From Oculina patagonica (lineage: Eukaryota): DNA of 64,000 nt. Where the stretch lies: NCBI RefSeq assembly GCF_052425735.1, contig NC_135767.1, positions 21,390,001-21,454,000 of the forward strand, read 5' to 3'. Under the pieces are notes generated by a model, which was given only the letters and a program-made list of their open reading frames with translations, was not told the origin of the DNA and made no database searches. Shown piece by piece: positions 2,450 to 61,050 of this stretch (the stretch's first letter is position 1; each line of letters opens with the position of its first letter). Both the position numbers and the translations under genes were made by a program.

Positions 2450-3783
2450 TCACTCAGTGGGATTGGTCGACTCCTCGATATATTTAAAGCTGAGTAACGT
2501 TATCGCCGATCCGTTCAGTTCCACTGTTGACAACCCGCCATCCAAAACTTTTCCAACTGCTAACTTGTTTTGGTTTCCATGTCGACTCGATTCCCCGCGA
2601 CAGATAATTTTGCTGAGGGATTCACGGTACTTTGGCATACGCCACGCGTAGACAAACGGATCTAACAGGACTTTCAAGTAAAGCAGGTTATCCACCATCA
2701 AGTTTGCAATCAGATCATTCGCGAAAAAAACATTGTCTTTAGAAAACATGTGTATTGTCCAAAAAATAGCTCCGGGCATGTTACATACAATCAACACAGT
2801 TAGCAGCATAAAATTCACACGGACAAAGTTGCGTTGCACTTGGATGTGCTTTCCGCTGTCTTGCGTCTCCGTTTGACCTCGAAGAGAGTTTCCTGCCGCC
2901 ATCTTCTTTTTCATCACGAAATGTAAAAGAATGTAAATAGCGATAGTCACAAAGGCTGAGAGATAACTGTGAATAAACAGGTCCATATAAAACTGAATAT
3001 TTTTGAGACATCCCCGTTAAATGCAGGCACCAGAACGCTGCTGAGTAAAGGTAGATCACTGCAACGCTTATCAACACTTTCCTCTTTGTCACCAAGCGGC
3101 CGTACTTCACAGGCGATGAAACTACGATGTACTGCGTCACGGTAAACGCTAAAATGATAAGAAAGGACGTGGTTATACCAAAAGCGCTTAAATATACAGT
3201 CAACTCTCTCTAAAACGGACACCTTCGGGACCGGCTTTAACTGTGCGTCTCAGAGAGGTGTCCGCCTTTTAGGGAGTTTAGTTACATTAAAATGACTGAA
3301 AACCGGCAGGGACGGGACCACTTCCAGGTGTCCTTCTTATGGAGGTGTCTATCCGTTTTATAGAGGTGTCCGTTAAGAGAGAGTTGACTGTAACCCATAG
3401 TTCAAGACATGTGGACATTTCTTCATCAAAGGATGCTGAAAATACAACAGCGTAACACAAGTGGCGTTTATGGGTTCTACAGTCAGTGCTGTTAGTAAGT
3501 CGACTATAGCCAAACCGATGAGATAATACGTGGTTGGGTTGCGAAAGATTTTCAATGGATCGACGCAGAAAGCGAGAAGAATAAGACCGTTTGCCAAGAT
3601 GGTGACAAACAAGGCGACAAACATGAAGATAGCTGAACCAAACGCAGCCTTGATAAAACCTTCCCATGGGTTGCGTCCAACAACAGGATGAGTAGCGTTT
3701 GCCAGAGAGGAACCGTTGTCGGTTGAATTGCTGTTAAGCATGATTTCCATTGTGGAATTAAAGGCTTCACTCGCTAACTGCAT
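2450..3783 (-). pseudogene. Atypical class A GPCR copy 1 (subfamily A), disrupted
   Basis: ORFs 3373-3783, 2781-3203 and 2450-2986 join into one 7TM protein. It is interrupted by the MITE at 3197-3390 (removal restores NYGL-YLSAFG) and by a +1 in the T run 3000-3004. Confidence 0.9.
3197..3390. mobile_element. Tc1/mariner-pogo type MITE inside GPCR copy 1
   Basis: TIRs CAGTCAACTCTCTCTAAAACGGACACC / GGTGTCCGTTAAGAGAGAGTTGACTG; TA duplicated at 3195-96 and 3391-92. Confidence 0.92.
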
Positions 3784-5789
3784 GTTCTAGGTGGCAATCG
3801 AACGAATAATCTCCGTGATGATTTTTTGGCTGTGATTCAAAGCAGCCTTTACGTTCAGAGGAAACATTGACCTTAATGGCTGCAACTGTCGCTTATTCTT
3901 CCTTTAAGAAGTATTTCCATCATTTAATTTCTCATGAATATTTATCTTTAATTGTTCGTTTCCAGCTGATTTATCCAGACTGATATACAATTATTTCACC
4001 CACTGGTGTTAATAAAGCGACCTCCCAAATGGCCTTAATGCTTTCTCTCCTGGACTTGTAGAATATTAGTTTCCCCGAAGTGGTCGTCATATGCCAGCTA
4101 ATTTATCCTTTTCAAGCTTTCGTGATAAGAAATTCGGCGAGTTTAAAAATAGAATAAAACTTGCGAAGACAAATATTTTTGCATGCAAGGTTGATGTGCC
4201 AGTAACTTCTGAGCCAGTATCACATATACATATATTAATTATTCCCTAAATTAAAGAAGCCCTCTCAAATGACTATGAGGAAGAGAATGACCAAGATCAA
4301 CGTTGTTAGATTCCCAAGTAAGAGAGAAATGAAGTAAATTTTCAAGTCTCTGAAGAATGCTTTTAATTCCTGATAATTGCACACACGCTATCTTTAAATT
4401 TCAGGGTTTTATTCTAGGTGTATGGCAAAAAGCAATCTTACTGCAGCTGGCATCAGGATGTTAAAATTCGGACTGAGAGAAAAATGAGTGTTTCAATAAT
4501 TTCACCCACGCTATCTTCAAATTACAGAATTTAATGTTAGGTGTATGCCAAGCAGCAATCTCACATTCAGCTTTACCAAAACTTTGTTCTCATTTAAGCG
4601 CCACTTATTAGTTCTGGGTGTTTTGAAAAAAAGAAAAGAAATACTTACCAGGTTTAATTTGAGCTACTCTATTCATGACGTTGACATATGTGCAGTTTCA
4701 TACATTGTCTCATGGCCTAGGTTCTCTTTGTTGAAATACAATTATCATGATAGCATATAGTGAAAGCGAAAGGATTGATATTGCAAGTGAATATAAAGCT
4801 AAACAAAGTAAGATATAAACTGTCAAAAGGAACTGAGCCGTGCCATCCACAAGAAATTAAAAATGTCCATTTACCGAATTTTCCTTTAATGTGGCATATA
4901 TGTTCAAACAGTTTCATACAGTTTTATTTTGTTATTTTGTTTTGGACTCCATATGATTGACTTAAACAAGAGGAACCAAAAAACAAATGATATTCTTTTG
5001 ACAAATATACAAGAAACTCATTAACTAGATCACATCCCGCTGTAGTTGTTTAGTAACAGAACTTCGCAAACAGATACTAATTATCTTAAAACCTCCCTCG
5101 CCTTCCCAACAAGCTTATAAACTGTTCGAAGGTGTGTCATAAAGTTTGACTGACATTGAACACAATCACATTACTTTGAACGTGTCTGTTATATGTTAAC
5201 AAAGAGCAAAAACCCTTACTTTGTGATACATATTTGTTTATTGACGATTAATGTACACATTTCGCATTCAGTGTAATGTTTGGAGAACACTTCAACAACA
5301 ATAATTAACGAAAACGTCTACATTTTTACGAGAAAGACCATTATTTATATGCAATGGTTCTATTTTCGTTCACTTAAAAAGCTTAATATAACATATGGTT
5401 TTTACAGACAATCGTTCTGCGTTTGAACATAAAAGCTAAATACAACACTGTTAATCTTTCTTTCAATATATATTACGGGACTATCTTGAAGTATCATGAC
5501 TTTAGTTGTCTCAACTGTATGCAGAAATATACATACCTAATCAGTATATAATAAACATATTAGGGCTGCTTCAACATCCACACGCATTCATTTACGAAAG
5601 TCCTCGTATTCTTTTATTTTTCGGCCGAAACATGATTGAAATGATACATCGCTACAGTCAAGCTAAAACTTTGACCGTCCTAAATATTTATACATTTTTT
5701 CGGACGACTCCACTTTTATTTATTATATTTTTAAAGCTAACTGCCTATCTATTCATTTCTATTGCTGACAATTCACCATGGAGACTTAG

Positions 5790-58934: not shown

Positions 58935-59889
58935 TAAAAGCCGCCTTATAGCAATGGGCGCTTTTTGGAGTACTTCATTTACATGATCAATTTGCACTCA
59001 AAGAACATTGTTGCAGAATTTTTACACATCGTATATTTCAGATGAGGCGTAAGTTCTTGATTAAATAATCCTTTCTTTCCTCAGGCGAGATTAAGATATG
59101 TATTAGGTTTTGCCATCAAGGAAGGTAAAACAAAAGCTAGCCTACAAATTAGCCTTTTTATGCCCTCAGTTGCTTTTTTTAAAATAACACACATATAAAA
59201 AACGAAAGACTAGGAAGAGTTTGCAGTTAAGTTTTCAGATTTACTCTTCGGATCAACGTCCGAAAGTCAAATTTTTGTTATCATATGTGACTTAAGAGGA
59301 GCTTTTCACAGTTATGGACAAAATTTGGGCATTATTGATAAACGTAATTAAAGAAAACGAGAATTTCCTGCTGTGCCAAATAATTTGTTCTATTTCTTGA
59401 CCCTAGCGTGGGGTAGAATTACTCATTAATTAAAGTTATTGAAATTACGGCTGTTTATCTTAAGCTCCAAAAGAAAATTGATAATTCAATTTAACCTGCT
59501 ACTGTTAATGCGTCTAATTTAGAAAAGAGAGTGATAGTCATATGGCGGAAAAACCTAATTGTTAAGGAATTGGAGCAAGTTAGTAGGCAGGTAGGTGGCT
59601 GGCAGATGGATGATATACCCTTAAATGGTAAAGAAAAATAAGCAACTATGCTTTAGCCGTTAATGCACAATAGAGATCATTTTAAATTGAAAGTAGCATG
59701 TTGACATTCCTTGTTGACAAACACGCATCTAAGAAAGCTCAGTGTTGTATTTGACGTATTTCAGCTGTTGCTTTTCATGTGCTAATGACATTTAATCAGA
59801 GGTTTCCCACCGTTACAACAAACAAAACAGAAAAACCATAACTCGAAACTCAAAAGTTTGCGAACCCTTTCTTCAGGAAAGTGGATAAG

Positions 59890-61050
59890 ATGGACCTTAC
59901 GTGCAACGCCTCGTGGCTTAACATTAGCAGCAATTCTTCTGATTCTTCAAACTGGCTAAACCAAAACGTATCTGCTCATCTGTCAGCTTGCGGTGAGTTC
60001 GGCGCCCGGAGACCACCACCGATCAACCCTTTTGAGGATTTTTACAAAGCCGCTTTCGGCTCTGCCATCTTCATGTTCGTGGTTTCGTTCACCACAGTCC
60101 TAGCCAACAGCCTTCTTCTTCTCATTTTCTGCATCGATCCATTGAAAATCTTCCGCAACACTACCACATATTTCCTCATTGGTTTGGCCATAGTCGACTT
60201 GTTAACAGGACTGGTGCAAGAGCCCATATACGCCACTTGTTTCATTTTCTTGTACTTGCGACATCCTTTGACGCCCAAATGTCAACCATACATGCAATTT
60301 GCACATCACTTCGCAACCTTCTCGATAACGGTATCGTTGGTAATCGTTTTCGCCTTTACCGTGACGCAGTATATCGTGGTTGCATCACCTCTGAAGTACG
60401 GCCGTTTGGTGACAAAGAAGAAAGTCCTCATTAGCGTCGTGTTCATCTATGTCTACACTGCAATCTTCTCTTGTCTGCCTTTGATGGGTGTTTCAGAAAA
60501 AGTTCACGATGCCATAACACTATTCCTTCACAGCTATGCAGTGGTCCTGGTCACCATCGTTTTTTACATCCTTCTGCATTATACCATGAAAAGGAAAATG
60601 GCGGCAGCGAACTCACTTCAAAACGAAAGTACGTCCCGTCAGGAAAGTAACCATACTAAAGTGCAACGGAACTTTGTTCGCTTGAACGTGATCCTTTTAA
60701 TTGTGCTGATTGTGTGTTTCGTGCCTACGATGATTATGATGACAATACGACTGTACATGGAAGAACATCTAGCTCCTTACTGGCAAAAGGTTCTGATTGC
60801 AAATTTGATGACAGATAACCTGCATTACCTGAAATTCCTGTTAGACCCGTTCGTGTACGCGTGGCGCATGCCGAAGTATCGAGAATCTCTCAGTAAAATA
60901 ATTTGCCGTAAAAATATCGCAAAGAAATGGAGGGGAAGTGAACGCGAGAGCAAGTCTACAACTGGAAGTCGCGTTAGTGAATTAACAACTGTGGAACTAA
61001 ACAAATCGGAGATAACTTTGCTAAGCTTTAAAAATATCTCTGTGGACTGA
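59890..61050 (+). CDS. Atypical class A GPCR copy 13 (subfamily A)
   Basis: Intact 7TM ORF; first ATG is 59890 (the track start at 59881 is GTG). Confidence 0.93.
   Translation: MDLTCNASWLNISSNSSDSSNWLNQNVSAHLSACGEFGARRPPPINPFEDFYKAAFGSAIFMFVVSFTTVLANSLLLLIFCIDPLKIFRNTTTYFLIGLAIVDLLTGLVQEPIYATCFIFLYLRHPLTPKCQPYMQFAHHFATFSITVSLVIVFAFTVTQYIVVASPLKYGRLVTKKKVLISVVFIYVYTAIFSCLPLMGVSEKVHDAITLFLHSYAVVLVTIVFYILLHYTMKRKMAAANSLQNESTSRQESNHTKVQRNFVRLNVILLIVLIVCFVPTMIMMTIRLYMEEHLAPYWQKVLIANLMTDNLHYLKFLLDPFVYAWRMPKYRESLSKIICRKNIAKKWRGSERESKSTTGSRVSELTTVELNKSEITLLSFKNISVD

Follow-up and report, generated by a model that had tools for sequence, protein, structure and literature searches.

A tandem array of class A receptors without the DRY arginine in Oculina patagonica, and a putative hexacoral clade marked by lysine 7.45

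Arginine 3.50, the arginine of the DRY motif at the end of the third transmembrane helix (TM3), and the sodium pocket rank among the most conserved functional elements of the G-protein-coupled receptors (GPCRs) of class A, and the question raised by the locus described here is what becomes of a receptor family in which both have been changed. The family is encoded by a tandem array of the coral Oculina patagonica on contig NC_135767.1 (NCBI RefSeq assembly GCF_052425735.1), in a stretch of 64,000 nucleotides (positions 21,390,001 to 21,454,000 of the forward strand) that is referred to below as the window. Thirteen intronless class A GPCR genes of one family were identified by listing open reading frames (ORFs) and by tblastn searches that used the intact copies as queries. 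A preliminary reading of this DNA, made from the letters alone and referred to as the sequence-only reading, had described a 13-member GPCR array; the count stands, but three of the members (g01, g02, and g03) are pseudogenes and the N-terminus of a fourth, g12, is broken. Nine copies have complete open frames of 364-389 amino acids. Together with g12 they constitute the ten intact-looking copies on which all alignments of window copies are based, g01-g03 being omitted (Table 1).

A six-frame motif scan of the window finds 13 true sites for F-[TS]-x-T-Q-[YF] and 13 sites for K-x3-D-P-x-V-Y, one pair per copy, with a chance expectation of about 0.1 as roughly estimated from residue frequencies. 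The F-T-x-T-Q-Y/F string that had been reported for every copy is thus present in 13 of 13. In HMMER alignments of the reference copy g13 and of the ten-copy profile, T-Q-Y falls onto the D-R-Y of beta1-AR, beta3-AR, CB1, and A2A, which places glutamine at position 3.50 (residue 160 of g13, codon 54377-54379). The alignments of g13 to solved receptors also put Ser149, 11 residues ahead of Gln160, onto S3.39, Tyr187 onto W4.50, Lys315 onto N7.45, and Asp319 onto N7.49, the NPxxY motif being replaced by DPxVY in the array copies. The W6.48 position, next after Cys6.47, is occupied by F, N, or S. All of the assignments made in the sequence-only reading (Gln3.50, Ser3.39, Tyr at 4.50, S/N/F at 6.48, and DPxVY) agree with these alignments. 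In TM7, however, that reading had listed DPxVY and overlooked Lys7.45, which turns out to be the most conserved member of the trio non-Arg3.50, Lys7.45, and Asp7.49.

Membership in class A is established by Pfam 7tm_1, which the copies match with 38-65 bits (cutoff 30.5) over profile positions 2-260 of 260. An AlphaFold2 (AF2) model of g13, built from a 117-sequence alignment with a predicted local distance difference test (pLDDT) score of 84.8 and above 95 in the TM core, has seven TM helices and helix 8; it supersedes a run on the ten window copies only, which reached a pLDDT of 55. Foldseek matches the model to beta1-AR, A2A, H2R, and CB1 with a probability of 1.0. TM3 spans residues 128-165, which puts Gln160 five residues short of the helix's cytoplasmic end, the place expected for 3.50. 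Invariant in the ten aligned copies are N73 (1.50), D103 (2.50), P279 (6.50), and Y323 (7.53), as well as P167 and L168 in the second intracellular loop (ICL2) and Y226 (5.58). The class A hallmarks that are absent are Arg3.50 of E/DRY, Trp6.48 of CWxP, and Asn7.49 of NPxxY; the loss of W6.48 is common to DRY-bearing sister groups as well. The outer end of TM3 is one turn longer than that of beta1-AR (a 4-residue alignment gap).

Neither the alignments nor the AF2 model places another arginine at 3.50, and TM3 of the family has no arginine near this position or otherwise available, in agreement with the sequence-only reading, which had placed Gln there. Two arginines elsewhere were considered as compensation and rejected. 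The one in Y-A-W-R, at the turn between TM7 and helix 8, is found in 19 of 20 DRY-bearing sister proteins, and Arg6.31 is likewise common to the DRY-bearing sister groups.

Could the arginine have been lost simply as damage in a family of dead or dying genes? Three of the 13 copies are indeed broken. Ten frames are nevertheless open, the motif is conserved across genera, and pairwise dN/dS (Nei-Gojobori) is 0.19-0.31 inside the sequence groups, between which dS is saturated. The codons of the motif vary synonymously: for Gln3.50, 11 copies use CAG and two use CAA, and all four ACN forms are used for Thr3.49, which indicates drift at the DNA level beneath a protein motif that is preserved. Arginine (CGG/CGA) is one transition away from CAG/CAA, yet it is absent at 3.50 in all copies. 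Decay is therefore hardly credible as an explanation, and the evidence supports the loss of Arg3.50 being maintained by purifying selection.

The sequence-only reading had argued for selection from the invariance of the motif across three divergent subfamilies. Four sequence groups are found instead (g04/05/07/08; g06; g01/02/09/10; g03/12/13/14), and although selection is borne out by dN/dS, by the synonymous codons, and by the residues of close homologues from other corals (n=120: Gln3.50 in 118, Lys7.45 in 120, Asp7.49 in 118), the array-wide invariance itself is inherited from a much older ancestor and was not acquired independently in each subfamily. Within the four-copy group g04, g05, g07, and g08, dS over the last ~48 aligned codon columns, which encode the C-terminal tails, is far below that of the rest of the gene (0.10 for g04-g05 as compared with 0.69-0.85 elsewhere). 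This suggests gene conversion of the tails, from a small region with a noisy estimate.

Selection does not act evenly along the receptors. The cytoplasmic helix halves together with ICL1, ICL2, and helix 8 have a mean pairwise identity of 0.67 and omega values of 0.09-0.24, whereas the extracellular halves have a mean pairwise identity of 0.49 and omega values of 0.19-0.46. Outer TM3, outer TM5, and the third extracellular loop (ECL3) are the most variable between paralogues (identity 0.17-0.37). This is the pattern of constraint of receptors that would share an intracellular partner and differ in their ligands. Ser and Thr are abundant in the C-terminal tails. Past the poorly conserved part of the tail, the last ~15 residues of the ten aligned copies contain I/V-T-L-L-S-F-K or V-T-L-D-F-K-S-I-S, with the Leu invariant and the Phe nearly so, and this conserved C-terminal motif could be a trafficking or docking signal.

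Is the trait a peculiarity of the Oculina array? The ten-copy profile was searched against 1.84 billion representative proteins and gave 3787 matches at E<=1e-3, of which 123 were at E<=1e-30. Key positions were read in the best 150 of the 3787 matches after alignment to the family hidden Markov model, and 95 of these, all representatives clustered at 50% identity, cover both TM3 and TM7. The 95 fall into two kinds. Lysine 7.45 is present in 75, not one of which has Arg3.50 (65 have Gln and 4 have His, and the remaining 6 have Ser, Leu, Tyr, Ala, or Asn), and 73 of the 75 have Asp7.49. The 20 proteins without Lys7.45 all keep Arg3.50, with Asn7.49 in 18. In a column-by-column contrast, the clade-specific positions are 3.50, 7.45, and 7.49, and two TM6 positions numbered 6.40 (Leu) and 6.33 (Phe). 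Tyr4.50, on the other hand, is largely confined to the window family, being found in 12 of the 95 representatives while most have Trp4.50.

A maximum-likelihood tree of 85 full-length representatives and the ten window copies places the Lys7.45 proteins all on one side of a branch with an ultrafast bootstrap (UFBoot) of 99 and an SH-like approximate likelihood ratio test (SH-aLRT) of 94; with the trait columns removed the same branch is retained at 86 and 93. The homologue search and phylogeny that the sequence-only reading had proposed as a check find the trait clade-wide and on a single branch. In a quick tree, a subclade of 8 rows splits first, with Asp3.49 kept, a variable residue at 3.50, and Asn2.50, and the careful tree again recovers these 8 rows as one group (100/98). 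The other 67 rows of the quick tree form the Gln3.50 clade (SH-aLRT 95), in which Asp3.49 is also gone and inside which the window family is a well-supported twig of 15 rows.

Named members of the clade come from Oculina, Orbicella, Pocillopora, Nematostella, and Actinia. Neighbours in the ESM Atlas are mostly cnidarian; further word-index searches returned few matches, with names from sea anemones only, and the only cluster names are Nematostella and Actinia. By these sequence comparisons the trait is not peculiar to the Oculina array: it marks a large clade, so far recorded in hexacorals only, that comprises at least 75 clusters at the 50% identity level across corals and anemones. Since named members come from both, the clade is older than the divergence of stony corals from sea anemones. 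Clade members also occur in the Nematostella GPCR set that Thiel et al. 2024 derived from transcriptomes, all with Lys7.45 and Asp7.49, namely NVE2971 (S-Q-C), NVE23282 (T-Q-F), NVE528 (A-Q-L, with Asn2.50), and NVEC200_006740 (S-Q-Y), and their presence in such a set suggests that the anemone members are transcribed. The clade TM7 strings that were searched are absent from the table of 161 tested Nematostella receptors in the same study, and none of the clade's receptors appears to have been deorphanised in that screen. One of them has a Logan contig without a poly(A) tail, which is uninformative on transcription either way.

What, then, do the substitutions do? In class A receptors the allosteric sodium is held between D2.50 and N7.45, a D2.50/D7.49 pair has been proposed as a binding site for cations, and receptors with N2.50 can rely on D7.49 (PMC6685040). 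Every one of the 75 Lys7.45 proteins that has a residue aligned at 2.50 carries an acid at 2.50 or 7.49. The reading that we favour, with moderate confidence, is that the receptors function with an activation core that has been rewired, Lys7.45 probably lying in the sodium pocket between Asp2.50 and Asp7.49. On the stem branch of the clade, Arg3.50 would have been lost while Asn7.45 became Lys and Asn7.49 became Asp, all together. The ammonium group of Lys7.45 would fill the sodium site and pair with Asp2.50, Asp7.49, or both as a built-in cation; such rewiring of the polar core may have made both the ionic lock and the Asp3.49-Arg3.50 pair dispensable, and the pair would then have been lost. 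A relaxed constraint on 3.50 once Lys7.45 and Asp7.49 were present agrees with the variable residue found there in the subclade that splits first. Gln3.50 may cap the transducer pocket as a neutral residue that forms hydrogen bonds, and the receptors would be activated by ligands through diversified binding pockets while using a common intracellular partner.

The cytoplasmic face is consistent with such a scheme. Helix 8, the Pro-Leu motif of ICL2, and the tyrosines at 5.58 and 7.53 are retained, from which it can be argued that a transducer still docks there. On balance, G-protein coupling is somewhat likelier to have been kept than lost, and a non-standard activation mechanism is plausible. 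A bolder and more general proposition, which we put forward only tentatively and regard as possible rather than probable, is that hexacorals possess a branch of class A receptors in which Lys7.45 bridges Asp2.50 and Asp7.49 in place of sodium and in which transducers are coupled without the DRY arginine. If true, this would be a case of natural G-protein signalling without Arg3.50, with a self-contained 'sodium' switch.

Several points weigh against a rewired activation core. The trio arose on one branch, and its association is accordingly a single evolutionary event and not repeated co-evolution. The clade is known mostly from metagenome or read assemblies, and its taxonomic range depends on the named members. 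The contact between Lys7.45 and an aspartate, though probable, is read from position alone. Finally, Arg3.50 is a main G-protein contact in solved complexes, and its loss could mean that another partner is used.

One proposal, towards which the sequence-only reading had pointed, is that the receptors are atypical and do not couple to G proteins at all, being arrestin-only receptors, scavengers, or decoys in the manner of the vertebrate atypical chemokine receptors and C5aR2, in which either the arginine of DRY or the motif as a whole has been altered. The absence of Arg3.50 from all 13 copies and all 75 clade representatives, the further loss of Asp3.49 in the main clade, and the Ser/Thr-rich tails are what such a proposal would lead one to expect. 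It accords less well with the size and age of the clade (>=75 clusters at 50% identity, in corals and anemones), which are unusual for decoys, with the cytoplasmic half being the most constrained part, and with the retention of Tyr5.58, Tyr7.53, and the Pro-Leu motif of ICL2. The resemblance to receptors of the arrestin-biased or scavenger type comes down to the missing arginine and is a poor fit with the conserved cytoplasmic face. Furthermore, within families that otherwise have DRY, the atypical chemokine receptors and C5aR2 stand as single genes or in small groups, whereas the coral case is a whole ancient clade that adds linked changes at 7.45 and 7.49. Atypical receptors of this kind are therefore an unlikely explanation.

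A different proposal is that the proteins are independent of ligand, either tonic signallers or accessory subunits of other receptors, which without an ionic lock and with a fixed internal salt bridge would keep to one conformation. In some receptors, as in the R137 variants of the vasopressin V2 receptor, mutation of the DRY arginine is known to make activity or arrestin binding constitutive, and in the coral family the Asp3.49-Arg3.50 pair is lost. The TM6 position numbered here as 6.40, a known site of constitutive activity, is changed to Leu throughout the clade. The outer parts of the receptors speak to the contrary: outer TM3, TM5, and ECL3 are the most variable regions yet lie within extracellular halves under purifying selection, a pattern expected of diversified ligand pockets and not of a ligand-free scaffold. 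We consider this proposal quite improbable, and ligand-activated receptors with a rewired core remain the preferred reading.

The lysine of TM7 also raises the matter of opsins, in which such a residue binds retinal. It is invariant, NCBI automatically names the Oculina and Orbicella members 'melanopsin-B-like', and melanopsin and squid rhodopsin are among the many fold matches. The lysine, however, aligns with N7.45 of beta1-AR, CB1, and A2A, two residues away from the Schiff-base position 7.43, which is the invariant Tyr313, and in the sequence and profile comparisons the best scores go to adrenergic, adenosine, and cannabinoid receptors, not to opsins. Opsin identity is accordingly rejected and can be given only the faintest probability. 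The automatic names themselves are inconsistent, with other clade members called cannabinoid receptor 1B-like or MSH receptor-like, and carry no weight; being misleading, they call for caution in coral studies that infer function from names.

To which known receptors, then, is the family closest? In profile comparisons CB1 is the closest solved receptor (E 7e-13), A2A, 5-HT2, and the beta-adrenergic receptors come next, and the aminergic scores are almost equal; by fold, beta1-AR, A2A, H2R, and CB1 are nearest at ~17-23% identity. At this level there is a likeness to the MECA group (melanocortin, EDG, cannabinoid, and adenosine receptors), with the difference that DRY is not retained in the coral clade. 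A second extracellular loop (ECL2) of ~3 residues (200-202 in the model) with no conserved cysteine and no TM3-ECL2 disulfide, an unbroken TM5 (203-244) without Pro5.50, and DPxxY (here DPFVY) together with Asp2.50 are shared with the melanocortin receptors, for which the short ECL2, the absence of the disulfide and of the TM5 proline, and DPxxY with Asp2.50 are described in a review of MC4R (PMC6685040). The melanocortin and cannabinoid receptors nevertheless have Arg3.50 in DRY and Asn7.45 (seen for CB1 in our alignment), where the coral clade has Gln3.50 and Lys7.45. Two cysteines of the coral copies, C117 and C131 (g13 numbering), located at TM2's outer end and where TM3 begins, are invariant, and an N-terminal pair, C8 and C34, is nearly so; these pairs may substitute for the absent TM3-ECL2 disulfide.

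Partial precedents exist for the changes in TM7. The gonadotropin-releasing hormone (GnRH) receptor has an N2.50/D7.49 swap, and its pairing is matched by the basal subclade of the coral family, with Asn2.50 and Asp7.49. Asp7.49 is also common to the coral clade and to PAR1 and P2Y12, which are treated as D7.49 receptors in the MC4R review (PMC6685040). Unlike the coral clade, the GnRH receptor, PAR1, and P2Y12 keep Arg3.50 and are without Lys7.45.

The tandem array itself is ordinary for corals, such arrays being a known hallmark of coral genomes. The rhodopsin-like GPCR is the commonest domain among coral-amplified gene families (34 of 192 orthogroups, with function unassigned), and amplification of coral GPCRs has proceeded largely by tandem duplication, according to the sections of PMC10236652 drawn on here. 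The Oculina array is one such tandemly amplified family, and the Gln3.50/Lys7.45/Asp7.49 signature is not described in those sections. A full-text literature search found no paper mentioning K7.45 or Lys7.45, and, judged by title and abstract, the papers in which 'DRY motif' is joined with 'cnidarian' or 'Nematostella' seem unrelated to the Lys7.45 clade. What sets the clade apart is that both conserved parts, the DRY arginine and the sodium pocket, have been changed together and that it has been kept under selection since before the divergence of stony corals and sea anemones, which makes it a natural experiment on how the middle of a receptor communicates with its G-protein pocket.

Table 1. 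Receptor copies and other features of the array (positions in the window)
Feature	Positions	Strand	Evidence and remarks
g01, pseudogene	2453-3792	-	FTVTQY, DPFVY; tblastn pieces in three frames; ~170 bp insertion between 3204 and 3372; frameshift near 3000
g02, pseudogene split by a miniature inverted-repeat transposable element (MITE)	5868-7567	-	two high-scoring segment pairs (HSPs) ~528 bp apart
MITE inside g02	~6347-6875, ~520 bp	-	16-bp terminal inverted repeats GAGGGTCnGAATGGGG; at the MKK/KMAAG junction, third intracellular loop (ICL3)
g03, pseudogene	9714-10858	-	FTVTQY, DPLVY; frameshift near 10352 and in-frame stop in TM6
g04, intact, 370 aa	11952-13064	-	ORF; Pfam 7tm_1 E 4e-11; Gln codon CAA
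g05, intact, 367 aa	14413-15516	-	ORF; FTITQY, KFLLDPFVY
g06, intact, 364 aa, most divergent	20641-21735	+	FTFTQF; Pfam 7tm_1 E 1e-9; ~45% identity to other copies
g07, intact, 367 aa	25148-26251	+	ORF; both motifs
g08, intact, 369 aa	30420-31529	+	ORF; both motifs
g09, intact, 380 aa	35415-36557	+	ORF; Pfam 7tm_1 E 1e-15
g10, intact, 389 aa	41463-42632	+	ORF; identical to public protein P0029
Assembly gap, 148 N	44025-44172		between genes; interrupts no copy
Unrelated canonical class A GPCR, 312 aa	45305-46243	+	DRL, NPILY; Pfam 7tm_1 E 1e-26; inside array, just past gap
g12, N-terminal region disrupted	49038-50096	+	ORF opens at Met inside TM1 (49119); upstream frame broken
g13, intact, 386 aa, reference copy	53900-55060	+	Pfam 7tm_1 E 1e-17; PDB alignments; AF2 model
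g14, intact, 389 aa	59881-61050	+	ORF; matches protein P0002

The layout of the locus is that of a birth-and-death tandem array in which the three pseudogenes are recent. Copies g01-g05 lie on the minus strand at the left end, and the remaining eight (g06-g10 and g12-g14) on the plus strand, in a window with a GC content of 35-41%. The NCBI model for g12, P0003 (354 amino acids), matches 49038-50093 and has two codons added from an upstream exon. The count of 13 copies is a lower bound because the assembly gap could conceal another copy. The gap is flanked by a relic that follows g10 (ending at 42929) and by the unrelated GPCR; it is crossed by no reading frame, and tblastn gives no family-like HSP within 1 kb on either side of it, nor between 42929 and 45305. 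A second run of N at 63708-63888 lies outside the array. Inside the MITE of g02 there is a run of degenerate short repeats (TCGG-containing units), and the element may help to date the death of this copy.

The relic (42633-42929, plus strand) stands in frame directly after the TGA of g10 and consists of a second partial TM7 and tail, NPMVDNVLYMKFLLDSFVYAWRMPKYREAFYKS, with Ser replacing Pro7.50. It is closer to the tail of g09 than to that of g10 and looks like the remnant of a partial duplication or of a tail exchange. Between g09 and g10, on the minus strand at 38440-39619, two overlapping ORFs with QRICH1, DUF3504, and phage-integrase domains resemble a Crypton-type tyrosine-recombinase element or a domesticated copy of one. 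An ORF of Lys/Arg-rich tandem repeats (units like KEKPHGKKKNLAAKRKTS) between g05 and g06 (16768-17166, plus strand) is probably repeat DNA and no gene. Beyond the window, the same 23.5-Mb contig carries a paralogue, P0092 (Oculina patagonica ACROYT_G034315), whose nearest relative is g03 and whose gene model is without ICL3 and TM6; the family therefore extends past the window.

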